From the NCBI GenBank assembly GCA_002269645.1, contig NIVC01002943.1, positions 65,345 through 129,344 of the forward strand: a DNA stretch of 64,000 bases, given 5' to 3'. The notes below the pieces were generated by a model. That model saw only the letters and a list, made by a program, of their open reading frames with translations, was not told where the DNA came from and ran no database searches. Position numbers and translations under genes: made by a program. Position 1 is the stretch's first letter, and each line of letters starts with the position of its first letter. This document shows, one piece after another, positions 1 through 64,000 of the stretch. Source of the DNA: Macrostomum lignano (taxonomy: Eukaryota).

Positions 1-2410
1 TCTTACCAGTTATGCACTCATTTACTAAAAAACGAATCCTCCCGACCCCACATTTTCAAGCAAATTCGGCACAGTTTTGAAAATGTATGAAAATGTACAC
101 GATCTTTGACAGTCTGTATCTTTGTAATCGTATGTCCTAAACATGTTAACTATATGTCGTTTAAAAGATCTGTTTGCCTTCTTTTCAATGAATATAAGAA
201 CATTGTCATATCTTAAATATTTAAAAAGTTATAGCCATTTAAAGAAGACCACTTTTTTACTGTTTTTCGGTTTTGCACACGCTAAAAATAGGCTCACTGG
301 ACACCCTACTAAATATAAGCCTTATCTTACTTAACCCTATATTTAAAATAGGGCTATAATTTTCCCTATATAGGTTTAATAGTGAGTGACATTATAATTA
401 GCCAAATTATAGAATATAGATAAGATATATTTCACAAAATATAGACTTTTACAATTTTAATAACATTAAACATTGGCTTTGTGAATGCTATATAAATGAT
501 TAGACCCTATGGGTAGGCCTATACTAAAAAGAAATCTTAGTTCTCACTGCAAAAATACAATAAAAAGCCTTTTTTATTGAGTTTTTATTTTTAGGTATCT
601 AAGTTTTCATTTTTAGTATATCTGATGTATTTATATTTCGAAGATCTCAGAGATTTAGTATATTGTGATTAAGTCACTAGATTTAAGAATATTTTATTAC
701 CTGTATCTCCAATAATAATGTACTTAAACAAGTAAGCGTAAGACATTATTACTTTAGAATATAAAATTGAGATGCGATTTGTTAATTGAAAACACAATCG
801 ATTAACACAAACTAACACAAGGCAAACTTAGTATAGTAACTTATACTTTTAATTGCGGGGAATAAACGTCAGGTGATAAACACACATATTTAATTTTTTT
901 CTTTCTTGGTACTTAGACGTATAAATTAAAAAAACACTGTAATTAGTTAAAAATCGGTTTTCTAAATATTTTTATGACGTTGGCAACAAACGTTTCAAAT
1001 TAAAGTCAATCTTTGTTTTAACTGATGAGCTTTTTGCGGAGTGCTTATAGAATTAAGTATATACTCCTGTAGCCATGCAGTTTTCTGATATCATGCCATT
1101 CTCGAATTAATCAGCAATGATATCAACATTACGATATTATACTATTTAAGCACCATTTTACGAAAATTAAAGGCTTTTTACGTTAAATGCATTAATATTT
1201 TATGCATGACATTTTAATCAGTCATCCGTAATTTCCATGTGGATGTACGTAAATTGTATGTATACTATTGTATATATCGTATGCATGCTTCCTACATATA
1301 GAGTATCTGAGACTAATTTAATTACATACAGTATTGTATGGATCGTCTAAGTACATAGTAATACACAGAACATGTGGAACCAGAATAATTGATTTGTGGC
1401 AAAAATTAGGCGAAATATGTTTTTTTATATACAAGTGCATCTATACAGTTGTATTGGATAATGCACAAATGCTTTTGGTATACATTATGCGCACATTATA
1501 TATCGCCATGTACATACCATATCTGCTTGTTAAATATTGTTTGGTGCTTTAGTACTGCCTAATTCGTGGTCTTTTTATTGTTGCGCATGCGTGTATTATT
1601 GATACACAGTAAATTTACATGCAAAGTATTGATTGATTTATGTATTTACAGTATTTTCAATACGAAAAAGATGTATACGAATGAATTAAGTTATATACTT
1701 TCATGTAATGGGTGGTATATCAGAAGAATCATTATTTCATTAAAAAGCTGTAAACTTAATGATATAACTCATTAACCAGCATTGCGTTTGCATTGTGCCG
1801 CGCCATTATTGCACTTCAACAAGGAAATGCAGCAAGATACAGTATATGTGAGGGCAAACAATTAAAAAGCCTATTAAATTCGGTCATGCCAGCCCAGACG
1901 AACTTTTCTAGAAATCACACCACTCAGAATAAAGCCGGCGTTAATTGAGCTGCAGGTGGTGGATCGTTAGCGGGGCCCGAGGAAGAGTCGTATAAGTCTC
2001 AGCGAAACACCGTCAAAGGCGGAGGCTCGGGACCGGCTGATAAGCCAAGCCGACGGGACAGCCCTGTGATCTCTCAGGTGTTGTAAATGACCATAAAATT
2101 ATTTTTAATGAGCAACAGAATTATTAAACTCGCAGGCAGAGCAGACCTGCGCAGTTTTATGATCGCCAATTCAACCTTGAGCTGTCGGTATTTAATAAAA
2201 GCATTCACTTCTTTCCCGAAGGGCCAGAAAAATGCAGATAAAATTATACTTCAATTGCCATAAAACATAAACAATCAGGGCAGACGGAAACAACAACCCT
2301 GTGCACCTTCGGAGTTCATAAAAGCTGAAACGATAAGTGGAGATTAGCAGTTTTTATTGATATTTGGAAGCACCTACGCCGATGCAGTGCGTATGCACCA
2401 ATGCTCAGCC

Positions 2411-4925
2411 CCCTGACACTCGATTCGGACCCGGCCCTGACACTCGATTAGGAGCCCTGACACTCGATTCGGACCCGGCCCTGACACTCGATTAGGAGCC
2501 CTGACACTCGATTCGGACCCGGCCCTGACACTCGATTAGGAGCCCTGACACTCGATTCGGACCCCTGACACTCGATTAGGACACTCCTGACACTCGATTA
2601 GGACACTCCTGACACTCGATTCGGAGACCTGACACTCGATTCAGACACTCTTGACACTCGATTCGAATCCCTGACACTCGATTTGGAGCCATGAGACTCG
2701 ATTTGGAGCCCTGACACTCGATTCGGAGCCCTGACACTCGATTTGGACCATTGACACTCGATTAGGACACTCTTGACACTCGATTCTGACCCCTGACACT
2801 CGATTCGGAGCCCTGACACTCGATTCGGACCCCTGACACTCGATTAGGACACTCCTGACACTCGATTAGGACACTCCTGACACTCGATTAGGACACTCCT
2901 GACACTCGATTCGGAGACCTGACACTCAATTCAGACACTCTTGACACTCGATTCGGACCCCTGACACTCGATTCGGACACTCCTGACACTCGATTTTGAG
3001 CCCTGACACTCGATTCGGAGCCTTGACACTCGATTCGGAGCCCTGACACTCGATTTGGACCATTGACACTCGATTAGGACACTCCTGACACTCGATTAGG
3101 ACACTCCTGACACTCGATTCGGAGACCTGACACTCGATTCAGACACTCTTGACACTCGATTCGGATCCCTGACACTCGATTTGGAGCCCTGAGACTCGAT
3201 TTGGAGCCCTGACACTCGATTCGGAGCCCTGACACTCGATTTGGACCATTGACACTCGATTAGGACACTCTTGACACTCGATTCGGACCCCTGACACTCG
3301 ATTCGGAGCCCTGACACTCGATTCGGACCCCTGACACTCGATTAGGACACTCCTGACACTCGATTAGGACACTCCTGACACTCGATTAGGACACTCCTGA
3401 CACTCGATTAGGACACTCCTGACACTCGATTCGGAGACCTGACACTCAATTCAGACACTCTTGACACTCGATTCGGACCATTGACACTCGATTCGGATCC
3501 CTGACACTCGATTTGGAGCCCTGAGACTCGATTTGGAGCCCTGACACTCGATTCGGACCCCTGACACTCGATTCGGAGCCCTGACACTCGATTCGGACCC
3601 CTGACACTCGATTAGGACACTCCTGACACTCGATTCGGAGCCCTGACACTCGATTCGGAGCCCTGACACTCGATTCGGAGCCCTGACACTCGATTCGGAC
3701 CCCTGACACTCGATTCGGACCATTGACACTCGATTTGGACCCCTGACACTCGATTTGGACCATTGACATTCGATTAGGACAGTCCTGACACTCGATTCGG
3801 ACCCCTGACACTCGATTCGGACACTCCTGACACTCGATTTTGAGCCCTGACACTCGATTCGGAGCCTTGACACTCGATTCGGAGCCCTGACACTCGATTT
3901 GGACCATTGACACTCGATTAGGACACTCCTGACACTCGATTAGGACACTCCTGACACTCGATTCGGAGACCTGACACTCGATTCAGACACTCTTGACACT
4001 CGATTCGGATCCCTGACACTCGATTTGGAGCCCTGAGACTCGATTTGGAGCCCTGACACTCGATTCGGAGCCCTGACACTCGATTTGGACCATTGACACT
4101 CGATTAGGACACTCTTGACACTCGATTCGGACCCCTGACACTCGATTTGGAGCCCTGAGACTCGATTTGGAGCCCTGACACTCGATTCGGACCCCTGACA
4201 CTCGATTCGGAGCCCTGACACTCGATTCGGACCCCTGACACTCGATTAGGACACTCCTGACACTCGATTCGGAGCCCTGACACTCGATTCGGACACTCTT
4301 GACACTCGATTCGGACCATTGACACTCGATTTGGACCCCTGACACTCGATTCGGACCCCTGGCACTCGATTCGGACACTCCTGACACTCGATTTTGAGCC
4401 CTGACACTCGATTCGGACACTCTTGACACTCGATTCGGACCATTGACACTCGATTTGGACCCCTGACACTCGATTCGGACCCCTGACACTCGATTCGGAC
4501 ACTCCTGACGCTCGATTTTGAGCCCTGACACTCGATTCGGAGCCTTGACACTCGATTCGGACCCCTGACACTCGATTCGGACCCCTGACACTCGATTCGG
4601 ACCCCTGACACTCGATTCGGACACTCCTGACACTCGATTTTGAGCCCTGACACTCGATTCGGACACTCTTAACACTCGATTCGGACCCCTGACACTCGAT
4701 TCGGACCCCTGACACTCGATTCGGACCCCTGACACTCGATTTGGAGCCCTGACACTCGATTTGGACCATTGACACTCGATTAGGACACTCTTGACACTCG
4801 ATTCGGACCCCTGACACTCGATTCGGACCCCTGACACTCGATACGGAGCCCTGACACTCGATACGGAGCCCTGACACTCGATACTAGATTCGGAGACCCG
4901 AAACTCGATTAAGAGCCCTGACACC
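2411..4925. repeat. Minisatellite array of 20-22 bp variant units around a near-invariant core TGACACTCGATT, with higher-order blocks
   Basis: Core recurs throughout, joined by a small set of linkers (e.g. cggacccc, cggagccc, aggacactcc, tggaccat). The rare variant tcggagacct recurs at 2621, 2911, 3119, 3431 and 3963 (2621 to 3119 = 498 bp). Confidence 0.97.
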
Positions 4926-5447
4926 CTCCGCTTTATTTGACTCCCCGACACCCAATTTGACTCCCTTGACACCTAGTTTAACTCCCTAACCTGAAACTCC
5001 TCCCTCTAAAGCATTAATAGCTACCCTCCAAATACCCTAACTAGAACCCCGTACAGAATCATCTCAGCAGTTGCCAGCAGGATTGCTCAATTGGAGAAAG
5101 CGATATTCGAGGATACACCCTCAAGTGTTGAGAGTTCAGCTGCACCTCAGGCTCAGCCTCAGGTTGCACTGACCAGCTCAGGCAGCCGCGGGGCGGTCAC
5201 ATTCCAGCGTATCTTATCAACCTTCAAGCGAAACCAGCAAGGCTCGGAGGTGCAGACAGGGGAAACGTATAAACTTGATCTACAGATAAGTTTAGACTAT
5301 CGAAAAAACACTGCACCTACTACACTATAAAATGGCTGACTGCCTATTGAGTTTTCGCTAGCAGACAAACGTAGTTTCTTAGCATAATTGATTTCTGTTT
5401 GAATTTTTACGCTGCAATCAGGCTATCCGATTTTCGAGTTGTAACCA

Positions 5448-6448
5448 ATGGCAACCAGCTGTTTCTTCGGTTCTTGCAACTGTTGGCAGTGCCGCCGGTG
5501 CTATGGCAGCAATGGGGTTGTCGGCAACACGGGCGGCTGGGCTCCCAGCGGCTGCCAGACGGCGCCTCCGCCGATGTCCCTGTGGCCGCCGCCGCCGCCA
5601 CCCCAGCCGCCCGCGCTGGCGCCGCCGAATCCTCAGCCCCGAAGGCGAAAGAGAAACCACGTGCCCCGGCCGATGAACCCTTTCATGGTGTGGGCCAAGG
5701 TTGAGCGCAAGCGGATGTCCAGGGCGCACCCGGATGTGCACAATGTGCAGTTGAGCCGGCTGCTCGGTGAGCTTACAATTACATCCACCCGTGTGAAGAG
5801 GGCCAGTCCCGAAGCCTCCGAGAGTGTACATGCCTGATGATGATGATGAGAAAGTCTGGGTCGCTGTACACCCCGTGTGAGCGTGTGCCTGCGCACGTAT
5901 CCGTGTGTGCGCTCTGAAGTCAGCGAAATGAGCATGACTGCTTGAGTTCCACTTTCAAGTAAACTAGCTAACTAACTGGACTCTGTCCGTCTTCAGGTGA
6001 CAGATGGAGGTCGATGCCCTACCAGGAGAAGCTGCCCTACATCCTGGAGGCCGACCGGCTCAAGCAGCAGCACCTGCTGGACCATCCGGGCTACAAGTAC
6101 CAGCCGAGGCGGAGGCGGAAGCAGCAGCAGCAGCAGCAGCAGCAGCAGAGCCAGGAGCTCATGAGCTGCCTCCATCCAGATCCTCGATGCAGCTGCCCCA
6201 GTTGCTGCTTATCACATCCAAACTCGGACAATCCAGCGGAGAACAAACACCAGCTCCACCACCAGCTGCAGCACCAGCTTCAATACCAGTCTCAGTCCCA
6301 GCTGATGGCCATCAGTGACAGCGCCAGCACGAGCCGCAGCATCAGCAGCGTCAGCAGCGTCAGCAGCAGCAGCAGCGAATTCGACTGCTTCGATGCGCAG
6401 TCATTCGCTGAATTTCTGGGAGGCCTGGACGTTACGCAGCTCTTATAG
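5448..6448 (+). CDS. Sox-family HMG-box transcription factor (SoxF/SoxE-like), 2 exons (5448-5766, 5997-6448), 256 aa
   Basis: Spliced HMG box reads HVPRPMNPFMVWAKVERKRMSRAHPDVHNVQLSRLLG|DRWRSMPYQEKLPYILEADRLKQQHLLDHPGYKYQPRRRRK. Phase-1 GT(5767)-AG(5996) intron; Pro-rich N-terminus; poly-Q (CAG run) and Ser-rich C-terminus; stop TAG at 6446-6448. Confidence 0.93.
5798..5891 (+). other. Intronic hairpin element, copy A (family shared with OXA1L intron 3)
   Basis: Shares AGAGTGTACATGCCTGATGA (20 nt exact) and CGCTGTACACCCC with 17198-17245, and GTGTGAGCGTGTGC with the reverse complement of 16975-16988. GTGTACA/TGTACAC arms can pair. Confidence 0.8.
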
Positions 6449-7670
6449 AGTCGGATCTTTGAGCTTTTTGTTGAGAACTGATAAGAGAAAAGCTGACAGC
6501 CTCTTGCCAATTAACGCAGAGAAAATTGGAAAGTTTAAAGTTTGTAAAAGTTGGTCAGGTACAAGTGAGTTTAGCGAAGTGTCAATGAGTTGCATGTTGC
6601 ATGCACTGAATCCAGTCTCCGATGAAGCCTAGAAAGTGTCCGGCAGTCAGGCTCCGTTTTCGCATAGCAACAGTCAGCTAATTTTATCAGTGGACTGCAC
6701 TCAGCTACCCTAATCCTGTAGATCAGGTGACCCTGTTTACCCGTTAATAAGAAAGATTTTAAATGTACGTCTTCCTTGTTTTGAAATTTTTGAGCACCCC
6801 AAGCAGCTGTCAATCTGTTGAAACCTCTTATTAAAAGGACGTCATGAACTTTTTGTACAATTGATTCTTCATCAAGTTTCACTTCCGATTCGACAAATAA
6901 AATAAACTGATGGTAAAAACGCGAGTTTTGCAAGCGCGCCAAGTTAATTCCCTGCAATTAGCAGGGCTCATCCATCATTTAATTGCACAGGCATCAGGAA
7001 GGCCCAATTGCAATAAGAATTTGTGGCTTCACTAAATAAGAAAGCTTTGAGATCGGCCTGAGAACAGTGCCAAGACCAGCTCAACCCTCGATCCCCCAGG
7101 CCAATGCAAAGCTGCATGGTTTCTGTTATGCAAACAAAGGAGCCTCTCCGAAGCCCGCGAGCGGTGCCGCCCCACGAGCGGTCTCTGCTGCTAGACTGCT
7201 GCAATCTGGCTGAGGGCGGGGGTGGCGATCGGCCTTCCCAAGGTGCGAATTGCCTCTGGAGCATATCAGTCTATCAGCGAGGGGTCGCCTCCACCCCCTT
7301 TCCACTCGGACAGGTGCTCGGGTCAATTACCGATAGTAAATAAAACTATTTTAACGCGGTGTAAAAACATGCAGGTGCCCAGCCCGAGCCGAGAACTCTC
7401 AACATGAATCAAAAAAATCTCAAGGGGTCAATATGGGCCTAGCAAAATATTAAACTGTTATAAAATCCTCTGACTGACAGGTGCTGATAAAATCTGGAGC
7501 TCCAAAGTTAATTAAATTGATATTTAATGCGTGGCAGAGTTGCCAAAACCAGATTTGCTCACGTGGCTGACCACTTAGTTGACCTTTTATGTACCCCTGA
7601 ATGCACTGCAGTCAGAATGGAAATTGCCCGTGCATTACAATATTTAGAACCAGAATGGGATACTCAAGAA

Positions 7671-8588
7671 TGCTCAGAGCTGACATTTTCACTCATGCTC
7701 AAAGCTGACATTGTCCTACATGCTCAAAGCTGACATTGTCATACATTCTCAGAGCTGACATTGTCCTACATGCTCAAAGCTGACATTGTCCTACATGCTC
7801 AAAGCTGACATTGTCCTACATGCTCAAAGCTGACATTGTCCTACATGCTCAAAGCTGACATTGTCATACATTCTCAGAGCTGACATTGTCATACATGCTC
7901 AAAGCTGACATTGTCCTACATGCTCAAAGCTGACATTGTCATACATTCTCAGAGCTGACATTGTCATACATTCTCAAAGCTGACATTGTCATACATTCTC
8001 AAAGCTGACATTGTCCTACATGCTCAAAGCTGACATTGTCCTACATGCTCAAAGCTGACATTGTCCTACATGCTCAAAGCTGACATTGTCATACATTCTC
8101 AGAGCTGACATTGTCATACATTCTCAGAGCTGACATTGTCCTACATGCTCAAAGCTGACATTGTCCTACATGCTCAAAGCTGACATTGTCCTACATGCTC
8201 AAAGCTGACATTGTCATACATTCTCAGAGCTGACATTGTCATACATGCTCAAAGCTGACATTGTCCTACATGCTCAAAGCTGACATTGTCATGCATGCTC
8301 AAAGCTGACATTGTCATACATTCTCAGAGCTGACATTGTCATACATTCTCAGAGCTGACATTGTCATACATGCTCAAAGCTGACATTGTCCTACATGCTC
8401 AAAGCTGACATTGTCATACATTCTCAGAGCTGACATTGTCATACATGCTCAAAGCTAACATTGTCATACATTCTCAGAGCTGACATTGTCATGCATGCTC
8501 AAAGCTGACATTGTCCTACATGCTCAAAGCTGACATTGCCATACATGCTCAGAGCTGACATTGTCCTACATTCTCAGAGCTGACATTT
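7671..8588. repeat. 25-bp minisatellite (AGCTGACATTGTCCTACATGCTCAA and variant ...GTCATACATTCTCAG)
   Basis: Period 25 (GCTGACA at 7754, 7779, ...); two interspersed unit variants. Confidence 0.97.
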
Positions 8589-9203
8589 TCCCTAAAGCTT
8601 GCCGTTTTGCACAGCCAGTCAGCGGACTGCAGTTTCTGCTACGAGTAGAAAGTTAAAATGCAGCCAAAGTTGCACGGAGGAAGCCCCCATTGTCTCCCCG
8701 CTCTCCTCGCTCTTAAGCAAAAATTTACACAAGCGGCATTCAGCAGAGCTTAACAATCAGCTATTCTAAGGATAAAAATCCTCAGAGCTCCGTGCAGTTT
8801 CCTCTCCAATTCAGAAGCCATTGCAACTTCCGTAGCCAGGCTGCTGCTGCTGCTGCTGCCTTCTCGCAACAAATTTCTTTGAGTTTCTTCAACGGGCCTC
8901 CTGAGTGCAGTGTTCAGTCCGCCGCAGTGTACCCGCGGCTTCATTCACCTGCTCCATTTCTCCCCTCCGCTGGGCGCCCCCGCCCGCACTCCCATTGTGT
9001 CAGTCAATCAATCAATCCTGACCCCACTGCAGAAAGTGGCGGAGGGGGGCAGCGTCGCCACCGCTGCCCAGAATCTGGCCAGGGCTTGAAGCGGTGGCTG
9101 TACTTAACCTCCGCCACTTTCACTCATTAGCGGCTGAGCATAGCACTTTTCCCTACTCATAACAGCCTTACTGGGAACTTCGTAGCGCAACGCACGCGGG
9201 AGA

Positions 9204-11156
<1,953 letters not shown>

Positions 11157-11384
11157 GCATCGGGACGTTGCCTGGAGCAACTGAAGGATGCAGTTTATGA
11201 ACAGACCCAGGATTCTCAAGTAGAGCTGCTCATTAATATATGTATGTAGCAATACAAAATACTTTCAATAAAACAGATTGAAATCAATGTATGCATATAC
11301 AGTTATCAATGTATGGTCTGCACATGTGCAAACCTCCATTCTCATGTAACCGCGCTGAAGTAACTGAAGGAAGTCACATCCCAG

Positions 11385-11700
11385 GCTTCTGTTCACAATC
11401 ACAGCCTGAAGGTACTCACACCTCAGGCTTCCGTTCACAATCACAACCTGAAGGTTACCCTCACCACGGGCTTCTGTTCACAATCACAACCTGAAGGTTA
11501 CCCTCACCACGGGCTTCTGTTCACAATCACAACCTGAAGGTTACCCTCACCACGGGCTTCTGTTCACAATCACAACCTGAAGGTTACCCTCACCACGGGC
11601 TTCTGTTCACAATCACAACCTGAAGGTTACCCTCACCACGGGCTTCTGTTCAAAATCACAACCTGAAGGTTACTACTCTCATCACAGGCTTTCGTTCACA
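11385..11700. repeat. 43-bp minisatellite (CTGAAGGTTACCCTCACCACGGGCTTCTGTTCACAATCACAAC), ~6-7 copies
   Basis: TCACCAC at 11461 and 11504 gives period 43. Lies downstream of the EF-hand gene poly(A) signal. Confidence 0.95.
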
Positions 11701-12380
11701 ACATTTCCTGTTAAAAAAAGCAGTAACTCAAAGCGGCAGAGCAGACTGATATCGACGGTCACAGAGATTTTAGTTTCAGTTTCAACTTTGTTGTTGGGCT
11801 GTTATTCTTCGAAACTTCTTAAGAGAATCGACCGGTTCTAGCGAAGAGGGAACTCGGTTTATTTGTGTTACTAATAGTAGTATTGGGAGCTGATCAAACT
11901 ATGTATCAGAATGGAAAGGCCGCAGCCGCACAAAACCAGCGTGTTGTTGAAGCGGGCAGTGAAACACAAGAAAAATACAGGACTGTGAAGTACATAGGGA
12001 CTACCGAGGGAATTTCAAACTAAGATGATGAAGATTAGGAGACTGCGCCTAAGACTAACCTCAACAAAACAGGGTTAAATAACAATTGAGATAGCGTTCC
12101 TATTTGCTCAATAAGATATTGAAATTTTTTAGAAACTACAAACAGTGTAATTCTGAACTTACTCGCGAAGTGTCTACTTATTATTGTAAGTAGTCACTAT
12201 AGTAATTTTAATATTAATAATAAATAGTTTTAATATGCTACCAATGAAATTGAAGATAGATATTTATCCGTACAAACTAAAAAAGTCCCAGCAAAGGCCC
12301 AGCACAGCTCAGTCAGTCTGCACTCAGTCAGTCAGGTCTCAGTCAAGCCTCTCAAAGCCGGTCTCAACCGGACGTCTAAT

Positions 12381-15711
<3,331 letters not shown>

Positions 15712-15760
15712 TGTTGCGGCTTTGAGAGAATTGAAGCTAAAGAGCTGCGGGATGGCCGGC

Positions 15761-15809
15761 ATTGGGGTCACGTGACGCTTGCGCTCGAGTGCAGGTAAAC
15801 ATGGATTGG
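15761..15809 (-). promoter_or_regulatory. Candidate ATP5F1A proximal promoter: palindromic E-box GTCACGTGAC (15767-15776) between two CCAAT boxes
   Basis: Perfect 10-bp palindrome ~56 nt upstream of the ATG; ATTGG on + at 15761-15765 and 15805-15809 (CCAAT on the sense strand). Function is inferred from motif shape only. Confidence 0.4.
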
Positions 15810-16296
15810 CTGGGCCTTTTATCTGTCTACCTGATCGTGTGTACCTATGACAGTGCCTGTGTGTACCTATGACAGAGCTCTCATGTCTACTTTCAAAATG
15901 GCCTATATTTCGCCATACTTCTAGATCCTGTTGCTAGAAAAATGAACAAAGAAAAGAAGCATAAAAGTCAACAAACTTAGATCTGTGCAGCGCAATTCAA
16001 AATGTATTTCGCGACAACACGCGAGAGCAACACCTCAATGAATTAATAAATGACCTTCTCGCATAACAGGTGCTACAAAACTAGCTAACAGTTGCACAGC
16101 TTGCAAGAAGACAAAATTATGAAAGCTGAGTAAAAATGCGACTTTAGAACAGACAATCTTAGTGTTTTAAGCTAATTGAAACTGAATTTATGACAGCATA
16201 GAAGTCAGGCCTGACAGCTTCAGATGAGTACGAGACACGAAATATTGATTTAGGATTTGTGCCGTTTTTACTTATAAATTAACAGCTATTGTGGCC

Positions 16297-19200
16297 TCAA
16301 ATGATCCTGCCACTCTGTCTGAGAGGCTGCTGCTGCTGCTGCGGCTGCTTCCGCCGAATCCGGTAAGTCTTGGGCACCTGAGCATCCCCGGTCTGGTCGG
16401 GCATCCTGGTGGCCTGGTACTCGCGATTCTCAATAGCCGGCATAATCTGATTGCGGATCCGATCGATGGAGCTGCTAGTCTCCAGGCTGGGTGGCGGCAG
16501 GTCCTCAACGCGGGGCAGGCCGATTCTGGACTTCCAGAACGCTTTGGCCGCCTCTGTCCGGTTGATGAGGTGCAGCAGCTGGGCGGTGGCGCCGGTGGCA
16601 AAGAAATAAAACAGATTGGCGCCCGGGAAATTCACCATACAGGTGAACACGAAGGCTGGCAGCAGGGTGTAGGCCAGCGGCTTCACCATGGACATCTGGG
16701 AAGGAGGGTTGGTCGGTGGGGGAAGTGTTGGAGGCGAATCTAAATGTCCTGGAAGTCTGGTGTGAAAGGATCTCAAATAATTAAAGGTTAAGCGTCAGAA
16801 ATGGCAGCTTTGGCCATAGACAAAACACAGCTGATTAATGTCTATATAAACCATGCCAGATGCCTAAATAAAAGTACATAGTGTCAGTCGATTAGGGAAA
16901 GGCCCATGCAATCCTGTGGTAGCTGCAATTTAGTCGCTCAGACTTAGCCGCAAATTAGAGACAGTCAATCCCCAAGCACACGCTCACACAGGGTGTACAG
17001 GGCCCTGAATTTCTTATCGACAAGCAGTGTACACTCTTGGGTTAATTAGGGTAGAGCAGCTTAGCAATAAACGCGTCTGGCTCGGCCCATGGTTCGATTC
17101 TGTGCGCGGCCACTTCCATTTGGGGCCTGTGTGCATGAAAATTGGACTCAGGGTTGTCGGGCGTCGGGTCCATGAGGGCCAGCCCCCCAAAGCGCACAGA
17201 GTGTACATGCCTGATGATTAGAATGTCAGGGCCGCTGTACACCCCTGTGTGAGTGCTCAGGAGCCAGCGGAAAGGGTAGAACTCAAACTCACTTTCTGGT
17301 GAGTGCCAGACGGCTGAGCTGCGTAGAACAGGTGCACATTCAGCATCAGCAGGCCGGTGACGGTGGCAGGCAGCAGGAAGTACGGGTCTACGCAGGTGAG
17401 GTCGGTCAGCCAGAGCACGCCGCCCTGTTGAAAGCTTTCCACAGGCAGGGCGGTGGCCATGTAGATGGCGCGGATGCTGGCCAGCTGAACAAAGGTCAGG
17501 GTGAAGCAGAAGCTGCCCAACACCATCATGTTGCGGCGCATCAGTTTCCGCATTCCAGACGGCGCCAAGAACTGGGGGAACCGTTCGAATGCCTGGAGTA
17601 CAACGAATGTGCAGATTAGTGGGGAACGCCGAGCTGCCCTACTGAGACCTCAGCTACTCTCCCTGTGCTTCAGGGACCTCAGCTACTCCCTCTCTGTGCT
17701 TCAGGGACCTCAGCTACTCTCCCTGTGCTTCAGGGACCTCAGCTACTCCCTCTCTGTGCTTCAGGGACCTCAGCTACTCCCTCTCTGTGCTTCAGGGACC
17801 TCAGCTACTCCCTCTCTGTGCTTCAGGGACCTCAGCTACTCCCTCTCTGTGCTTCAGGGACCTCAGCTACTCTCCCTGTGCTTCAGGGACCTCAGCTACT
17901 CTCCCTGTGCTTCAGGGACCTCAGCTACTCCCTCTCTGTGCTTCAGGGACCTCAGCTACTCTCCCTGTGCTTCAGGGACCTCAGCTACTCTCCCTGTGCT
18001 TCAGGGACCTCAGCTACTCTCCCTGTGCTTCAGGGACCTCAGCTACTCTCCCTGTGCTTCAGGGACCTCAGCTACTCCCTCTCTGTGCTTCAGGGACCTC
18101 AGCTACTCTCCCTGTGCTTCAGGGACCTCAGCTACTCTCCCTGTGCTTCAGGGACCTCAGCTACTCTCCCTGTGCTTCAGGGACCTCAGCTACTCCCTCT
18201 CTGTGCTTCAGGGACCTCAGCTACTCTCCCTGTGCTTCAGGGACCTCAGCTACTCTCCCTGTGCTTCAGGGACCTCAGCTACTCCCTCTCTGTGCTTCAG
18301 GGACCTCAGCTACTCTCCCTGTGCTTCAGGGACCTCAGCTACTCCCTCTCTGTGCTTCAGGGACCTCAGCTACTCCCTCTCTGTGCTTCAGGGACCTCAG
18401 CTACTCCCTCTCTGTGCTTCAGGGACCTCAGCTACTCCCTCTCTGTGCTTCAGGGACCTCAGCTACTCTCCCTGTGCTTCAGGGACCTCAGCTACTCTCC
18501 CTGTGCTTCAGGGACCTCAGCTACTCCCTCTCTGTGCTTCAGGGACCTCAGCTACTCTCCCTGTGCTTCAGGGACCTCAGCTACTCTCCCTGTGCTTCAG
18601 GGACCTCAGCTACTCTCCCTGTGCTTCAGGGACCTCAGCTACTCTCCCTGTGCTTCAGGGACCTCAGCTACTCTCCCTGTGCTTCAGGGACCTCAGCTAC
18701 TCTCCCTGTGCTTCAGGGACCTCAGCTACTCTCCCTGTGCTTCAGGGACCTCAGCTACTCTCCCCGTGCTTCAGGGACCTCAGCTACTCCCTCCCTGTGC
18801 TTCAGGGACCTCAGCTACTCTCCCTGTGCTTCAGGGATCTCAGCCTGAATTAGAAACCTCTGCCTGAATTAGGGACCTCACAGCCAGTGCCAGTGCCTAT
18901 AGGCATAGGCAGGTACTCATATGCCTACTCACCTCTTGCTGCATCCGCATGCTAGCCTGCATGTTGCCGGATCTCTCGTAGAATTTTTGCTGCTCCATAA
19001 ACTTCTGTAAATTAACAAAACTGGGCATGTCAACCCGCATCATACGCTGCAGGTACATATTGGGCAGCAGTAGCATGAGGCGAACGCCGATGCCCATCAG
19101 AACGGCGCACAACCACCAAGGCATGTCCAAGGTGACGTGCAGAGTCTCCAGCCACTTCAGCTGCAGACTGGACGGCCACAGGCCGGTGCCGAGGCCCAGA

Positions 19201-19864: not shown

Positions 19865-20090
19865 TGGGATAAACTGGCTCATTGTGCTGCTGCAGGTCCC
19901 ATGGGATAAACTGGCTCATTGTGCTGCTGCAGGTCCCATGGGATAAACTGACTCATTGTGCTGCTGCAGGTCCCATGGGATAAACTGGCTCATTGTGCTG
20001 CTGCAGGTCCCATGGGATAAACTGGCTCATTGTGCTGCTGCTGCAGGTCCCATGGGATAAACTGGCTAATTGTGCTGCTGCTGCAGGTCC
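19865..20090. repeat. 37-bp minisatellite, 6 copies, between the PEX1 stop and the OXA1L start
   Basis: GGGATAAA at 19866, 19903, 19940, 19977, 20014 and 20054. Confidence 0.95.
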
Positions 20091-20333: not shown

Positions 20334-23300
20334 TCAGGCAAACATCACTCTTCGGCCGGGTTGCAGTGCAGTTGGCGAAGCAGCAGATTCGCCGCCTACT
20401 ACTGACAGTAGCGAAGGCCGCACCCTGTCCAGAGCGGCCAGCAGCTCGGACTGTCCATAGCAGCAGCTGTCAGCGCTGGCCTCGGCAGCGGCTGCCAGCA
20501 GCAGGGCGTTAAAATCGGCCGAGCAGAAGCCCTCAGTAGAATCGGCGATGCGGTCAAGCAGCTGCTCCTTGTCGGCGAGTTCAGCGAAGCCGTCGGCAGT
20601 CAGCAGCGAGTCGATGATGCTCCGACGATCTTCGCGTCCGGGCAGCTGGCAGACGGCGCGCAGGCCGATGCGGCCGGGACGGAGCAGGGCGGGGTCGACG
20701 AGGTCCGGCCGGTTGGTGGCGGCCAGGAGGGCCACCCCGGCCAGGCCGTCCGAGTCCAGGCCGTCCAGCTCGGTGAGCAGCTGATTGACAACTTGGTCGG
20801 TGACGCCGGTGCTGTCGTTGCCGCGTCTGGGCGCCAGGGCGTCCACCTGGGGGGTTGAGGATTGGAAAGAGTGAACAGGCGTTGGGCTGTTCAAAGACTT
20901 CAATGTTCACTACATGACCCGTACAGCCTTTGGTGTACACTACTTGACCAGTACAGCCTTTGGTGTACACTAATGACTCGTACAGCCTTTGGTGTACACT
21001 ACAAGACCAAAGACCCGTACAGCCTTTGGTGTGCACTACATGACCCGAACAGCCTTTGGTGTGCACTACATGACCCGAACAGCCTTTGGTGTGCACTACA
21101 TGACCCGAACAGCCTTTGGTGTGCACTACATGACCCGTACAGCCTTTGGTGTGCACTACATGACCCGTACAGCCTTTGGTGTGCACTACATGACCTGTAC
21201 AGCCTTTGGTGTGCACTACATGACCCGTACAGCCTTTGGTGTGCACTACACGACCAGTACAGCCTTTGGTGTACACTAATGACCCGTACAGCCTTTGGTG
21301 TACACTACAAGACCAAAGACCCGTACAGCCTTTGGTGTGCACTACATGACCCGAACAGCCTTTGGTGTGCACTACATGACCCGTACAGCCTTTGGTGTGC
21401 ACTACATGACCCGAACAGCCTTTGGTGTGCACTACATGACCCGTACAGCCTTTGGTGTGCACTACATGACCCGTACAGCCTTTGGTGTGCACTACATGAC
21501 CTGTACAGCCTTTGGTGTGCACTACATGACCCGTACAGCCTTTGGTGTGCACTACACGACCAGTACAGCCTTTGGTGTACACTAATGACCCGTACAGCCT
21601 TTGGTGTACACTACAAGACCAAAGACCCGTACAGCCTTTGGTGTGCACTACATGACCCGAACAGCCTTTGATGTGCACTACATGACCCGTACAGACTTTG
21701 GTGTGCACTACATGACCCGTACAGCCTTTGGTGTGCACTACATGACCCGTACAGCCTTTGGTGTGCACTACATGACCTGTACAGCCTTTGGTGTGCACTA
21801 CATGACCCGTACAGCCTTTGGTGTGCACTACATGACCCGTACAGCCTTTGGTGTGCACTACATGACCCGTACAGCCTTTGGTGTACACTAATGACCCGTA
21901 CAGCCTTTGGTGTACACTACAAGACCAAAGACCCGTACAGCCTTTGGTGTGCACTACATGACTCGTACAGCCTTTGGTGTGCACTACATCACCCGTACAG
22001 CCTTTGGTGTACACTACACGACCAGTACAGCCTTTGGTGTACACTAATGACCCCACAGCCTTTGGTGTGCACTACATGACCCGTACAGCCTTTGGTGTGC
22101 ACTACATGACCCGTACAGCCTTTGGTGTGCACTACATGACCCGTACAGCCTTTGGTGTGCACTACATGACACGTACAGCCTTTGGTGTACACTACATGAC
22201 CCGTACAGCTTTTGGTGTACACTACATGACTCGCACAAAGAATTTAAGGTACACTACATGACCCACACAAAGACTTTGATCTACACTGCATGCCCCGCAT
22301 AAAGACTTTGACGTACAATTACATGACCAGCACAAAGTCTTTAATGTACTCTAAATGACCCGTAAAGGCCATGATATGCAGACCCGTACAAAGACTTTGA
22401 GGTCCATCTACTTCTTGACGCGTAACAGACTTTGATCTATCCCCTATCAAACAGGCGCAGACAATCATACACACCTCGTCCAGAAACACCAGACACGGCT
22501 GCAGGCGTCGAGCTTTAGCGAACAGATCGCGCACCGCTCGCTCGCTGGCGCCAACAAATTTGCTGAGCAGCTCCGGTCCGCGCACGGCCAGCAGACGGAG
22601 ACGGAGGTGGCGGGCCAGCGCCATGACCAGCATGGATTTGCCGCAGCCAGACGGTCCAGTCAGCAACACGCCAGCGGTGGCAGCGGCGCCGCCGCGTACG
22701 CGCTGGACTAAGCGCGGGAATCGCAGCGGCCAGATGATGGCGCGCTCCAACACAGCTTTGGCCGAATCCAGGCCGCAGATCTGAGCGCGATCATTTTGAC
22801 AGATTTTTGTAGATGACAAGACTGGCTTTTAGTGGGTGTTTATAGCTACTCTTAGAGGGTGTTTATAGCTACCGTTAGTGGGTGTTTATAGTTAATTTTA
22901 AGTGGGTGCCTATAATAGATATGTGTTTTAAGAGCAGAGTTTCAGTGGGTGTTTATAGCTACCCTTATTAGGTGTTTATAGCTACTCTTAGTAGGTGTTT
23001 ATAGCTGCTCTTTGTAAGTTTATAGTCACCTTTAGTGGGTGTTTGGAGTTACTTTTAGTGGGTGTTTATAGCTACTCTCAGTAGGTTTTTACGCTCGTTT
23101 AAGCTACTTTTAGTGGGTTTTTAAATCGGATGCTAGGTGTTCAGAACAGACTTTCAGTGGGTGTTTATAGCTTACCATCATTGGGTGTTAATGGCGATTG
23201 TTACATGGTTTATAGCGCATATTAAAGCTTGTAGCTTGTAGCGGAGTTATGTAGCTCCTAGCTCCTTACCTGGTCATACTCAAGCGGCAGCTGAGCCCTA

Positions 23301-26300
23301 GCCGGATTGCACTCATCCCTGGCCTGCCTGACAGCGCCCAGAGCCACTTCCAACTGAAGCCTGGCGGCAGTGTCCGGGCTGCAGTATTCCAGAATCCGCT
23401 TGCACCTGGCGAACTCGCCCAGCGTCAGCTGCCGGCTAGCGGAGTCGGCGCCATCAGCGGAGAGCGTCAGCAGCCGGCGCATGTCACCGGTGGGCGACAG
23501 GCGGATGTCCAACTGGCTGTCCGTGTCAAAGAGGCACTGACCGGCTGCCGAATCAATCAGCTGAGAATTTATAGGGCCGCCTGCAGTGGCCAGCAGCATT
23601 AAGCCGGGCTGGTGGCGAGCCCATTTCAATAGGCTGCGAATCAGGTGGCACAGGCGAACCAGCTGGACCTGATGGGCGGTTGCCAGGGGAGTAGGCAGCA
23701 TAGCTTGAATCTATCACAGGCAATTGTCGGTGCGCATAGGCCTGCTGCTTTCAAAATTGAGCAATGGGCCAGACTGGCATGCAGTGAAGCGAATCGTCAG
23801 GCCCTCACAAACACACGCGCCTGCTAGGCTCAGACTGTACATTTGGTGCCCCGCTAGCTACTAGAAAAATGTGCAGAGTGCGCGCTTATCTATTAAAGCA
23901 GGCATAATTACAGACAGTGTACGCAGCTGCCAGGGGCAGGTAAACAGTGAAGACATTTAGCGAGTAGCTTACTACTGCCTCAGGGGTCACACACTGCAAC
24001 GATAACAGATTCCGACAGGCGGCATTCGGGTTTGATTTGACCGCCGGCTTTAACACTTAGCAGTATATCTAGACTTTTATTCATAAAGCTGAGTCGATCA
24101 AAAACTTTTTTCACGGCAGTGGGGAAGCATTTTATCACATTTTTATAAACCTAATTTACTAAACGAAAATCTTTCTAAATATCAATAGAGCTATAGGAAT
24201 GGCACAACATATCAAAAGATGAACACTGGGTCTGCCTCCTATCGAAAGCAATAACAATTTTTGTGCTGAAAAAATGAGGACTTCCAATCTCCGTAGTGTC
24301 TTTTTCGGCGAGAACCAGCCTCATAAACATCTAAGAAACGTAGGAAACGTCATCTACTTGAGGAGTCCTTGATTTTTTTAATATTGGAGTTCTTGTAGAG
24401 GACTATGGCAACTGAAAAAAAGCTCAGACTGCAGGCTACCGAATTACACGAATCGAGTCCGGGACCCAGACAAAAAATCTCCGAATGCTATTGCTACCTC
24501 TGCGCCGGTGCCGACTTGGCCGTCTTCAACTGGCGCGCAGGCAGCGTCCAGGTTGTCCAGCAGCAGGCCAGCGGGCGCCCGGGCCGCGGCAAGGCGGGCC
24601 GACCGCCACAGCCGCCTGCGCGCCGATGCGAACTCCAGCCGGGCCAGCCGACGGCAGTCCACGGCGTCGCCGGCGTGGAAGCCGTTGCGACGCAGCCGCG
24701 ACGCGAACCGACACAGTAGCGCCGTTTTGCCTGAGCCGCCGCCGCCACCGCTGCTGTCATCTCGAAACAGAGTCAGGCAGCTCAGCCTGCTGGGACCGGC
24801 CACGGCCGCGGTGAACTGGCGAAACAGCTGACTGACCAGCGGCTCCAGGGCGTCAGCCAGCCAGTCTGGCAGCTGTTCGTTGTCGCCACCATCGCCATCT
24901 TGATCATTGACAGCGGCTGACTCAACTGTCGAGATGCCCAGCCGGGGTCCCAATTCGCGGCATAGGAGAGCGAATGGCAACTGAGGCGGCTGCTGCTGTT
25001 TGGCACTGCTCGGGTGGAAAATCAGCTCGGTCAGGCAGGCGTGATGGACACCGCTGTCTTCTGAAGCCAGTTTTTGTTTTCTTCTACTTTTTATGATCAT
25101 ACACTGGCTGCCGCTACCCTCCTGTGGGTCATACACTGGCTGCCGCTACCCTCCTGTGGGTCATTTAGTGGCTGCCGCTACCCTCCTGTGGGTCATTTAG
25201 TGGCTGCCGCTACCCTCCGGTGGGTCATTTAGTGGCTGCCGCTACCCTCCTGTGGGTCATACACTGGCTGCCGCTACCCTCCTGTGGGTCATACACTGGC
25301 TGCCGCTACCCTCCTGTGGGTCATTTAGTGGCTGCCACTACCCTCCTGTGGGTCATTTAGTGGCTGCCACTACCCTCCTGTGGGTCATTTAGTGGCTGCC
25401 ACTACCCTCCTGTGGGTCATTTAGTGGCTGCCGCTACCCTCCTGTGGGTCATTTAGTGGCTGCCGCTACCCTCCTGTGGGTCATTTAGTGGCTGCCGCTA
25501 CCCTCCTGTGGGTCATTTAGTGGCTGCCGCTACCCTCCTGTGGGTCATTTAGTGGCTGCCGCTACCCTCCTGTGGGTCATTTAGTGGCTGCCGCTACCCT
25601 CCTGTGGGGCATACACTGACTGCTGCTACCCTCCTGTGGGTCATTCAGTGGCTGCCGCTACCATCCTGTGGGTTATTCAGTGGCTGCCGCTACCATCCTG
25701 TGGGTCATTCAGTGGCTGCCGCTACCATCCTGTGGGTCATTCAGTGGCTGCCGCTACCCTGCTGTGGGTCATACACTGGCTGCCGCTACCATCCTGTGGG
25801 TTATTCAGTGGCTGCCGCTACCATCCTGTGGGTTATTCAGTGGCTGCCGCTACCATTCTGTGGGTTATTCAGTGGCTGCCGCTACCATCCTGTGGGTTAT
25901 TCAGTGGCTGTCGCTACCCTGCTGTGGGTCATACACTGGCTGCCGCTACCATCCTGTGGGTCATTCAGTGGCTGCCGCTACCCTGCTGTGGGTCATACAC
26001 TGGCTGCCGCTACCATCATGTGGGTTATTCAGTGGCTGCCGCTACCATCCTGTGGGTTATTCAGTGGCTGCCGCTACCATTCTGTGGGTTATTCAGTGGC
26101 TGCCGCTACCATCCTGTGGGTTATTCAGTGGCTGCCGCTACCCTCCTGTGGGGCATACACTGACTGCTGCTACCCTCCTGTGGGTCATTCAGTGGCTGCC
26201 GCTACTATCCTGTGGGTCATTCAGTGGCTGCCGCTACCATCCTGTGGGTCATTCAGTGGCTGCCGCTACCCTGCTGTGGGTCATACACTGGCTGCCGCTA

Positions 26301-29300: not shown

Positions 29301-29375
29301 TGGCACAGTGCCAACACAGGCTACAGAGCATGCCACGAATGCTGGCACTTTAGCATCAATGGATGCATACACAAT
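20334..29375 (-). CDS. PEX1: Peroxisomal AAA ATPase PEX1; exons 29375-29238, 29150-29064, 28819-28289, 27095-26688, 26542-26452, 25060-24498, 23668-23270, 22780-22475, 20846-20334; first exon uncertain (candidate 34361-34221)
   Basis: N-domain similarity ([34 protein letters not shown]); degenerate D1 ([15 protein letters not shown]); intact D2 ([34 protein letters not shown]|[47 protein letters not shown]); PEX1-type C-terminus PGRRVMFA*. All junctions in phase. Confidence 0.9.
20905..22400. repeat. 30-bp minisatellite (TACAGCCTTTGGTGTGCACTACATGACCCG) with a 306-bp higher-order repeat, in the last PEX1 intron
   Basis: Near-identical repeat-derived ORFs start at 20989, 21295 and 21601 (spacing 306); the array decays toward 22400. 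Confidence 0.96.
22825..23175. repeat. Degenerate ~21-bp array (TTAGTGGGTGTTTATAGCTAC) in a PEX1 intron
   Basis: Recurrent GTGGGTGTTTATAGCTAC with many substitutions. Confidence 0.8.
25100..26395. repeat. 32-bp minisatellite (TGCCGCTACCCTCCTGTGGGTCATTTAGTGGC) in a PEX1 intron
   Basis: Period 32 (25141, 25173). Variant composition changes along the array (tttag-type on the left, ttcag/catcc-type on the right). Confidence 0.97.
27184..28090. repeat. 40-bp minisatellite (GTGTGTCAGTGACGCATCAGCTTTCATTTTGTGTCACAGC) in a PEX1 intron
   Basis: Period 40 (27185, 27225), with occasional GT-dinucleotide deletions. Confidence 0.97.
28859..29003. repeat. 35-bp unit x4 in a short PEX1 intron
   Basis: CACAGGTACTTCAG at 28861, 28896, ... 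Confidence 0.93.
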
Positions 29376-30754
29376 CTGCAGTGTTAATATTTAATTGATG
29401 TAGTAAAAAATCAATGACTTGATAAGTGCATACAATATTGTTTCAAAACTCACCCCATTTTTAACAAGACTGGCTGAAATATGTTGACTAGAACTGAGCT
29501 TGCATGTACATGTTTTTTCATAGTTAGTAGATACTTTGACATTGCTAATTATCATAATCATGCAATATAGACCATGAGTTAAAAATATATTTGTTTGGCT
29601 TTTATTGTAATCATTAGTGTTTAATATGTACTTAAATTTTTATATCACATTAGAGACATAAAAAAATGGAAAATCACTAGACAACAAATAAGATAGCTAT
29701 CTTGACTTTGTTTTTGTCTTTGCAAAATCTTAATAACTTTTGTTTTGATCCTAATAAAAAGATGGCAACAATATTTTGAGACTAGATTTGAGAAAATTCT
29801 TTTTCATAGTAATTTAGATATCCATTTATTTAAATATTGAATAAACATTTTGGTTAAAAAATATTAAAATAAATCATAAAACAAATTTCATTTTAATACA
29901 GTACAAGAATTATAGATAACCATTAACATAGCAATAATAAAATATTTAAATAAATTATTGTTATCTAAAAAATACCTTGTTCAATGCCTCGAAAAAATAC
30001 ATTTAAAAGCACTAATAATTTCAACTTTGTCCAAATACTAATAGCTTAGTTAGGGACTGAATAAATTATTATGTATATAGCATTTTCATAGAAAATAGTA
30101 TACCATATTTAGTTTTCATGGCTACTTTTGTGACACAAAATTTGGTTTGTTTATTCATTGCAAGGTGGGTCTAAGATCTATTTCATTAAGTTCATTAGTC
30201 TCAATAGTAGATTAATTTTGCATTTGTTTTTTATGAGATATTATAATTAACCTTTTATCTAGTTAAATTAGATATTAATTAATAAAAATATTTTGTTACT
30301 AATTTTTACAAAGTCACTCAAAGTCAAATAGCCTTTTTGTTAAAATTTTGGTATAAATTTTTAGGAAACTTTATTTTAAGATAAAGCTTTTATTCTAGTA
30401 TGCAATACTACATTATCTTGATTCTAGCTTGTGGACCTTAGATAGAAAAGAACAAATGAAAAATGGACTAAGAAAAAAGTATAGACTAGAAAGTTAAAAA
30501 ATTCTTTGAAAGACTCTAATATTAATAAGATTTTGAAAGTTATTTTTTATTAATATTTTATTCTAATTGGTATCTTATTTGCTTAAAGTTAAATAAAGAT
30601 ATCTCAATATTGAAAATTGGTAAAATTAAATAAGTTACAAAAAATTTTGTATCTTGAAATTCATTTAGTTAAGAAAAGATTTTTGTTGCAACATATAAAT
30701 ATATTATTAACTTTACAAGCTGGCTAGACCCTGGGAAAGAATATGGCTTAACCT

Positions 30755-41728: not shown

Positions 41729-41863
41729 AGACTGTTGTGACCAGATACTCAAATTTGAGTTCCCTTTTATTGATGATGGCTGAGCATTTCTCAACTCAGA
41801 ACTTTGAGCCACAGGTAGTGGCAGCCTCTGCTGCTTCCGATGCCTGAGCTTCTCCTTGTGCCA

Positions 41864-62505: not shown

Positions 62506-62579
62506 GTAAGAGCTGAAAAATTGTAGAATCTTATGATTAAGTCATAAATAGACTTGGCATTTCGATTCCGAACTCCAAG

Positions 62580-63947
<1,368 letters not shown>

Positions 63948-64000
63948 GGTTCTCATTATCAACCTTCGATGCCGGCCGCCTGCAGTGAACGCCGACCAGC

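Follow-up and report, generated by a model that had tools for sequence, protein, structure and literature searches.

What is the short sequence that occurs three times, in introns of two unrelated genes, within a 64-kb stretch of the Macrostomum lignano genome (the window, whose numbering we use throughout), and does the resemblance of one copy to a hammerhead ribozyme say anything about its origin? The initial annotation of the window had described three related copies of a hairpin with a conserved stem and had read them as a possible hammerhead of the Penelope type, either degenerate or in need of dimerisation, with a SINE/MITE-type fragment as a fallback. We therefore asked how the copies are related, where they lie, what they could derive from and whether they hold the parts of a ribozyme.

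Three related copies in two introns

The copies, their host introns and the foldback formed by two of them are as follows.

5798-5896, + strand: copy A, about 99 nt with GC 0.60, found by BLAST, pattern, profile and covariance model
17174-17271, + strand: copy B, about 98 nt, the best folder of the three, found by the same searches
16963-17043, - strand: copy C, about 81 nt, diverged or truncated in its 5' part
5767-5996, + strand: 230-nt phase-1 intron within the HMG box of a Sox-like gene, host of copy A
16696-17292, - strand: 597-nt phase-0 intron of an OXA1L/YidC-like insertase gene, host of copies B and C
16982-17253, no strand assigned: B/C foldback with inverted arms at 16982-17037 and 17198-17253, 57 columns

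All three copies lie where the initial annotation had placed them, and their similarity is far beyond chance. In a self-BLAST of the window, A matched B at 78% over 86 columns (E 1.7e-12) and C, on the minus strand, at 78% over 74 columns (E 6.6e-10); pairwise identity across the three was 73-83%, corresponding to 17-27% divergence with indels. The strict pattern AGAGTGTACA-N20-45-CTGTACACCC-N0-2-GTGTGAG matched A, B and C alone, with 0 matches expected from 100 shuffles. Neither an nhmmer profile nor a covariance model run with its filters off found a fourth copy in the 64 kb. The three copies fall within 11.5 kb, leaving the other 52 kb empty of them, and they are the sole non-tandem dispersed repeat of the window. 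Their ends are defined and largely common, with the same 5' end in A and B and common 3' ends that carry a short repeated motif (GTGTGAGC GTGTGC) in A and C; beyond the refined ends, the flanks held no significant homology. Two scans of JGI metagenome contigs with the repeat pattern gave 0 matches, a chimeric six-frame peptide of the repeat had no match at E<=10 among 5.8 billion proteins, and a search of literature text for the literal sequence gave no match.

Copy A begins 31 nt past the donor of its intron. The spliced Sox-like product contains the complete HMG box (2-69/69) and matches a UniRef protein of M. lignano at 99% identity. The outer end of B lies about 20-36 nt from the donor of the OXA1L-like intron, according to where the end of B is set. 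A search of PDB sequences settled the identity of this second gene, with the spliced product aligning across the junction to residues 235-325 of human OXA1L (E 2.4e-6); a separate homologue search with the OXA1L-like protein returned no match. The alignments of spliced products thus bear out, at both sites, the intronic setting first proposed. Copies B and C are indeed an inverted pair, as had been suggested, arranged head-to-head with 57-column arms, and the two fold together into a long duplex (z -7.7, -6.4 and -5.5). The 160-nt spacer between them is not complementary at the DNA level, and we rejected a foldback reaching into it at that level.

The hairpin is built from the self-complementary GTGTACAC, which occurs twice at a spacing of about 36-41 nt, and from an inner CCUGA/UCAGG stem.

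5824-5830 and 5865-5871, + strand: stem arms of copy A, GTGTACA and TGTACAC
5875-5881, + strand: GTGTGAG tail of copy A
5835-5849, + strand: (TGA)5 microsatellite in the loop of copy A, from TRF and the alignment
17201-17207 and 17237-17243, + strand: stem arms of copy B
17011-17022, - strand: 12-mer TGTCGATAAGAA in the loop of copy C

Element class and origin

The three copies are probably old, decayed members of a palindromic interspersed repeat of M. lignano, about 85-100 nt long and most likely a non-autonomous transposable-element fragment residing in introns. The fallback of the initial annotation is thus the reading that the evidence favours. The data directly show the homology, the extents of the copies, their hairpin potential, their intronic position and the lack of hammerhead features; that the repeat was mobile, and to which class it belonged, we infer. 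Copies with defined ends, on both strands, in the introns of genes unrelated to each other favour transposable-element debris, and the divergence, the indels and the lack of compensatory changes fit neutral decay. Published work describes the M. lignano genome as highly repetitive and dominated by unclassified and tandem repeats. What speaks against an interspersed family is that the window has just three copies, confined to 11.5 kb.

On this transposable-element reading, a fragment would have landed in introns, where such debris is tolerated, and the hairpin would be the element's own internal inverted repeat, with no catalytic fold. The loop would have changed by slippage, giving (TGA)5 in A and the 12-mer that is found elsewhere as an array. 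Copies B and C may stem from two nearby insertions in opposite orientation or from one inverted duplication; as a pair they would form, in the intron of the OXA1L-like pre-mRNA, a foldback with 57-bp arms that is spliced out along with it.

As to class, the odds are roughly even between a MITE-like DNA element and a retroposon of LINE/SINE type represented by its 3' stem-loop tail. Like MITE or foldback remnants, the repeat is short and intronic, has a strong internal inverted repeat and hairpin potential, and occurs in both orientations, with an inverted pair building a longer foldback. Unlike a MITE, it has no demonstrable target-site duplication, and its inverted repeat lies inside the 98-nt unit, whose extreme ends showed no terminal inverted repeats. 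Candidate target-site duplications did not rise above background (a 7-mer at A, P 0.02; C, P 0.06; none at B), the window-wide null being inflated by tandem repeats. We know of no partner transposase for the repeat.

Stringent-type LINEs and their SINE partners (CR1/L2-like) have a 3' stem-loop tail with a conserved stem and a variable loop, followed by a short repeated 3' motif. Judged against this general picture, the repeat is similar in its conserved stem, variable loop, 3' motif and shared 3' end, and in a copy C that may be 5'-truncated. It differs in that A and B have the same 5' end, so that there is no clear truncation series, in that no LINE ORF lies nearby, and in that the B/C spacer, read as a tRNA-Ala-like head (GGTAGAGC, CTTAGCA, GGTTCGAT), was not significant and was rejected: alignment of an approximate tRNA-Ala query to the spacer gave P = 0.04, with 47/2610 window tiles scoring as well. 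ARAGORN found no tRNA at default settings; at relaxed thresholds it called 197 'tRNAs' in the window. The copies showed neither a poly(A) tail nor a supported pol III or tRNA-like head, and similarity of the repeat to the V-SINE conserved domain, again with an approximate query, was not significant. Among the ORFs of the window, the sole one with a transposon flavour is Myb/SANT-like (40667-41728) and had no link to the repeat.

Local duplication and intronic function

Two further features near the copies bear on other possible origins.

14306-14481, + strand: array of the 12-mer TGTCGATRAGAA, tandem and interspersed, in an ATP synthase alpha intron (14170-14501, - strand)
5780-5796, + strand: tail-like fragment TACATCCACCCGTGTGA, directly upstream of copy A, resembling the 3' end of the unit, TACACCCCGTGTGA

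The TGTCGATRAGAA unit matches the 12-mer in copy C's loop exactly and closely resembles the loops of A and B; its array lies about 2.6 kb from copy C and starts about 20 nt from the donor of the ATP synthase alpha intron. Amplification of a loop 12-mer as an array in a neighbouring intron is an odd detail in its own right.

Inverted duplication, gene conversion or minisatellite-associated rearrangement might instead have copied a segment of about 90 nt locally, at low copy number, within the 11.5-kb neighbourhood, and the segment may be related to the neighbouring arrays. The confinement of every copy of the window's only non-tandem dispersed repeat to this neighbourhood, the adjacent and inverted positions of B and C and the amplified 12-mer all agree with such an event, as does an array of a 30-mer at 20.9-22.2 kb that contains paired GTGTACAC motifs and gave weak covariance-model matches (E 0.2-0.3); on the TGTCGATRAGAA array, the matches of the same model were sub-threshold (E 0.9). 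The likeness to the arrays is short and below significance, however, and the copies have diverged by 17-27%, sit in different genes and orientations and have flanks without homology. We consider a local duplication unlikely.

A tail repeat before copy A had also been taken to hint at a tandem origin. The 11-mer concerned, CACCCGTGTGA at 5786-5796, is there and is unique in the window, but it supports a tandem origin weakly: as a tail repeat it reached P ~0.02 against unit A and ~0.05-0.06 against B and C, over several tests. A head-like stretch downstream of B gave P ~0.46, leaving the tail-to-head tandem model weak, and TRF found no tandem array of the unit itself in the window.

Could the hairpin be functional? 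The outer stem, GTGTACA/TGTACAC, is identical in A, B and C, at 14/14 columns vs 29/48 in the rest of the core (Fisher p = 0.003, post hoc), and this higher conservation could reflect constraint instead of chance or ascertainment. The conserved stem and variable loop of the initial annotation therefore stand, but without covariation, since the three copies held compensatory changes at 0/22 pairs. Copy B is an imperfect 22-bp hairpin that folds better than shuffled sequence (z -2.8), and A (z +0.75) and C (z -0.1) fold no better than shuffled; thus, the hairpin is not maintained in every copy.

A functional structured intronic element, either a hairpin or long-hairpin source of small RNAs (miRNA-like or endo-siRNA) or a protein-binding splicing element near the 5' splice site, would accommodate the invariant stem, the folding of B and of the B/C duplex, and the position of both sites, which begin roughly 30 nt from a 5' splice site, as well as that of the 12-mer array next to another donor. 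Closeness to the donor is expected, however, because the introns are short, and two or three introns permit no inference. The absence of covariation also speaks against such an element, no Rfam miRNA or other family matched, and a miRNA-like reading of the hairpin fails because of the poor folding of A and C. Reading UGAUGA/CUGA as the boxes of a C/D snoRNA gave only chance-level Rfam matches, which (GAUGA)n produced against archaeal sR34 and sR43, and was rejected. Overall, we regard a functional element as quite improbable. Very improbable, in our judgement, is a cis-acting intronic module in which TGTCGATRAGAA, as a binding site for protein or RNA, would sit in the loop of a hairpin that GTGTACAC clamps, some 20-50 nt past 5' splice sites; sometimes amplified to arrays, it would act in splicing or small-RNA biogenesis instead of being inert transposon debris.

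Hammerhead-like boxes in copy A

The boxes that suggested a ribozyme are the following.

5834-5840, + strand: CTGATGA of copy A
5850-5853, + strand: GAAA of copy A
5854-5856 and 5860-5862, + strand: GTC of copy A, twice

Flatworms carry hammerheads by the thousand (PMC4209133), and the type-I box order reported for copy A is present and rare by chance, with 1 CUGAUGA-GAAA-GUC order observed vs 0.03 expected per 64-kb window. In copy A only, a helix I can be drawn beside GUC 5860-5862 (C5833-G5863 and G5832-C5864, a U bulge, then 7 bp), although it fails the rule of 3 contiguous bp. The head-to-head B/C pair and the weak tail repeat upstream of A would also suit a minimal hammerhead that has degenerated or needs dimerisation and that descends from a Penelope-like element or from a retrozyme.

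The core boxes, however, differ between copies. A core of C3-U4-G5-A6-N7-G8-A9 and G12-A13-A14, with an A15.1-U16.1 pair and H17, was not common to the family: CUGAUGA, GAAA and a usable GUC occur together in copy A only, with B having GAAU (15.1 = U) for GAAA and GCC where A has GUC, and C having CUUGUCGA in place of CUGAUGA. CUGA and GUCAG are opposite strands of the inner hairpin stem. Helix II of a canonical hammerhead has about 4 bp. It is missing in copy A, where the segment UGAUGAUGA, part of (TGA)5, is 9 unpaired nt (fold 0.0 kcal/mol), and in copy B, where the segment is only 3 nt, vs an enlarged helix II of 7-8 bp in Penelope minimal hammerheads (PMC4209133). What had been read as the helix II region of copy A is supplied by (TGA)5, which the alignment shows to be missing from B and C. 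In helix III of copy A, A5853-U5861 closes over a G-G mismatch, and the strand AGUCUGGGU is not palindromic, pairing in trans at -3.0 kcal/mol vs -8.9 for a made-up palindromic control.

Model searches agreed. A formal type-I/minimal-hammerhead descriptor gave 0 matches even with a helix II of at least 1 bp allowed. The Rfam models Hammerhead_1, _3, _II, HH9 and HH10 had no match at gathering score in the window, and no Rfam ribozyme model matched at E<=10 on stretches of 221 and 431 nt, a scan whose E-values are scaled by 4227 families such that only a per-family E below ~0.002 would show. The list of 46 ORFs of at least 150 aa in the window consists mostly of read-throughs of tandem arrays; the 20 non-repetitive ones, scanned with Pfam, contained neither an RT nor a GIY-YIG domain, which counts against the proposed link to Penelope.

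The repeat resembles the Penelope minimal hammerheads (PMC4209133) in the box order of copy A, an almost absent helix III, the flatworm host and the inverted pair, but differs from them in its missing helix II, a core that varies by copy, a non-palindromic junction, no Penelope ORF or terminal-repeat context in the window and no covariance-model match. Non-LTR retrozymes form tandem units of 150-450 bp with low GC and canonical type I hammerheads, and vertebrate retrozymes are depleted from introns (PMC7229834; bioRxiv 10.64898/2026.07.22.740005). A possible 1.2-unit tandem trace at copy A recalls them; unlike them, the repeat is about 90 nt long with GC 0.6, solitary, intronic and without a ribozyme. 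We conclude that the hammerhead likeness is a coincidence confined to copy A, and that descent from a Penelope-type or retrozyme hammerhead is extremely improbable.

Had the hammerhead idea been upheld, it would have meant a new minimal ribozyme class without helix II in a model flatworm. Its failure carries a caution, namely that a plain hairpin and a (TGA)n microsatellite can together yield CUGAUGA...GAAA...GUC. The object that remains, otherwise ordinary, is an unclassified short hairpin repeat that is useful for repeat annotation.

Three related copies in two host introns

Self-BLAST matched copy A of the hairpin repeat to copy B (78% over 86 columns, E 1.7e-12) and to copy C (78% over 74 columns, E 6.6e-10), and a strict three-block pattern matched exactly these three units and nothing in 100 shuffles, bearing out the initial annotation's claim of three related copies. 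Over a 72-column core alignment, identities were 83% (A-B), 78.5% (A-C) and 73% (B-C); the flanks had no significant sequence in common. Neither an nhmmer profile nor a covariance model of the hairpin, run with filters off, found a fourth copy in the 64 kb, and metagenome scans, a six-frame peptide search and a literal sequence search of the literature returned no matches outside the window. Tandem arrays aside, this is the window's sole dispersed repeat.

Homology limits of the copies, and their host introns
~5798 to ~5896, plus strand: copy A
~17174 to ~17271, plus strand: copy B
~16963 to ~17043, minus strand: copy C
end at 5766: Sox-like exon 1
5767-5996: Sox-like intron, host of copy A (230 nt, phase 1)
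5997-6448: Sox-like exon 2
17292 down to 16696, minus strand: intron of an OXA1L/YidC-like insertase gene, host of B and C (597 nt)

The proposed intronic setting held up in both genes. The spliced Sox-like protein is 99% identical to M. lignano UniRef A0A1I8HSC7 and its HMG box is complete, matching profile positions 2-69 of 69; therefore copy A, which starts 31 nt past the donor, sits in a real 230-nt intron. The spliced OXA1L-like product aligned with human OXA1L residues 235-325 across the junction (E 2.4e-6). The repeat sites start ~20-36 nt 3' of the 5' splice sites (5798 versus the donor at 5767; 17262-17271 versus the donor at 17292); the Sox-like intron has its copy in sense orientation, the OXA1L-like intron antisense-first. 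This nearness to donors may be coincidence, there being two introns only, both short.

Within the Sox-like gene (5448-6448), the phase-1 intron splits the HMG-box coding sequence at the glycine of LSRLLG/DRW; the encoded protein is rich in proline at its N-terminus and includes runs of glutamine and of serine. Three almost identical M. lignano paralogues (158-160 aa) are listed in UniRef, consistent with the recent genome duplication known in this species. Nearby genes encode ATP synthase alpha and a PEX1-like AAA ATPase (both minus strand), an EF-hand protein and a Myb/SANT-like protein. The last is a 353-aa ORF without introns (40667-41728, plus strand) with DNA-binding domain PF13873 (E 1e-17). 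Domains of this type are often of PIF/Harbinger transposon origin; we found no connection between this ORF and the hairpin repeat.

Hairpin, loop and surrounding arrays

Every unit carries GTGTACA and TGTACAC, spaced 36-41 nt, which form a direct and an inverted repeat at once because GTGTACAC is self-palindromic. Within them lies an inner stem, CCUGA with UCAGG; copy B alone adds an outer one, CACAG with CUGUG, and so reaches a 22-bp imperfect hairpin. B folded better than shuffled sequence (z -2.8), whereas A (z +0.75) and C (z -0.1) did not. Taken over the three copies, 81% of cells are paired. The outer stem is conserved, as had been claimed: 14/14 stem columns against 29/48 others (p = 0.003, post hoc, on motifs used to recognise the copies). 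A check for covariation, which had been suggested, found no pair changed on both sides among the three copies, and the seven outer pairs, being invariant, are uninformative either way.

B and C do form an inverted pair. Their arms lie head to head, 16982-17037 pairing with 17198-17253 over 57 columns, and the 311-nt region as a whole folds into one extended hairpin, whichever strand is taken (z -7.7 and -5.5 as RNA, -6.4 as DNA); the 160-nt spacer shows no complementarity at the DNA level.

In copy C the loop includes the exact 12-mer TGTCGATAAGAA (17011-17022, minus strand). The A loop, TGATGATGAGAA, is two substitutions from this 12-mer and the B loop, TGATGATTAGAA, three. An ATP synthase alpha intron consists mostly of an array of the same 12-mer, which starts ~20 nt from the splice donor. 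Either the loop seeded the array or the unit captured the array's motif.

14306-14481: array of the 12-mer (TGTCGATRAGAA), tandem and interspersed
14170-14501, minus strand: ATP synthase alpha intron

A large share of the non-coding sequence, intergenic as well as intragenic, consists of minisatellite or microsatellite arrays, and these account for most of the window's long spurious ORFs. In the 5-30 kb part run through TRF, units are distinct per array, with periods of 4, 12, 23, 25, 29, 30, 32, 33, 37, 40 and 43 nt. The region of the PEX1-like gene holds a 30-mer minisatellite at 20904-22237 (44 copies, higher-order period 306 nt), in which GTGTACAC recurs every 29-30 nt (13 of the window's 15 occurrences, against 0.7 expected) and which gave covariance-model matches to the hairpin below threshold (E 0.2-0.3). 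A short-period repeat forms two long arrays on opposite strands, 20 kb apart, at 41864-42556 and 62578-63950, with up to 99% identity over ~700 nt. Segments 1-2000 and 29000-34000 are AT-rich (GC 0.27-0.34 versus the usual 0.48-0.56).

Stretches occupied by arrays
2000-5000
7670-8587
9439-9851
10229-10550
11384-11701
12671-13733
17646-18844
19865-20081
25097-26390
27173-28059
41800-44600
46160-47460
53500-55630
57990-59110
62578-63950

Comparison with hammerhead ribozymes

The initial annotation raised the possibility of a degenerate or dimer-dependent hammerhead, with the boxes of copy A in type-I order. That order is present in copy A; it is absent from B, which has GAAU and, in place of the cleavage triplet, GCC, and from C, which has CUUGUCGA instead of CUGAUGA.

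Elements of copy A, corrected positions
5824-5830: GTGTACA
5831-5833: TGC
5834-5840: CTGATGA
5841-5849: TGATGATGA
5850-5853: GAAA
5854-5856: GTC (first)
5857-5859: TGG
5860-5862: GTC (second)
5863-5864: GC
5865-5871: TGTACAC

Stem I can be drawn in A with GUC 5860-5862 as cleavage triplet (C5833-G5863, G5832-C5864, a U bulge and 7 bp). The helix II position holds nine unpaired nucleotides (fold energy 0.0 kcal/mol), part of a (TGA)5 microsatellite that B and C lack; in B it spans three nucleotides only. In helix III of A, a G-G mismatch would lie under the closing pair A5853-U5861, and the strand paired with itself, as in a dimer, reached -3.0 kcal/mol versus -8.9 for a made-up palindromic control. 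A formal type-I/minimal hammerhead descriptor found no match in the copies or on the window's plus strand, even with helix II at 1 bp, and the suggested Rfam scan gave none at gathering score, nor at E<=10 on two short stretches (E-value scaled by 4227 families). With helix II missing, the boxes differing in B and C, and both searches negative, the hammerhead proposal was not borne out.

The loose order CTGATGA..GAAA..GTC is uncommon, observed once against 0.03 expected per window, yet this rate would still yield hundreds of occurrences by chance in a genome of several hundred megabases. It arises in A because CUGA and UCAG are the two inner-stem strands, the additional GA-rich stretch being microsatellite sequence. 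The loops of all three copies are related to the 12-mer, and CUGAUGA is therefore not a conserved box; judged from these sequences, the hammerhead boxes are not characters of the repeat family.

In Penelope elements, minimal hammerheads lack helix III and combine an enlarged helix II of 7-8 bp with a short helix I of 4-5 bp (Cervera and de la Pena, PMC4209133), whereas copy A lacks the very helix II on which that family depends. Nor did any of the 20 non-repetitive ORFs scanned contain an RT or GIY-YIG domain. Metazoan retrozyme units are tandem, low in GC and 150-450 bp long, and vertebrate retrozymes are depleted from introns (PMC7229834; bioRxiv 10.64898/2026.07.22.740005); the M. lignano repeat, in contrast, is ~90 nt, of GC 0.6, solitary and intronic. 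We conclude that a ribozyme reading of the repeat is not supported.

Class of the repeat

Copies A, B and C are most likely transposable-element debris left in introns: decayed units of a short, palindromic interspersed repeat that may be either a retroposon tail or a MITE-like element. A retroposon tail would match the conserved stem-loop, the short motif repeated behind it (GTGTGAGC GTGTGC in A and C) and the 3' ends common to the copies, with C perhaps 5'-truncated. A MITE-like element would match the ends, both of which are common to A and B, the strongly palindromic unit and the occurrence of copies in both orientations. Against either class, we found no target-site duplication above background, no significance in the resemblance of the B/C spacer to a tRNA and no similarity to the V-SINE domain. 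For the suggested tandem origin, the 17-nt tail-like fragment upstream of A was weakly significant (P ~0.02) and the head-like stretch downstream of B was not significant (P ~0.46). Since the three copies are confined to 11.5 kb, duplication at low copy number within this neighbourhood, instead of a mobile family, stays a live rival, albeit an unlikely one. Overall, the feature counts as an ordinary repeat.
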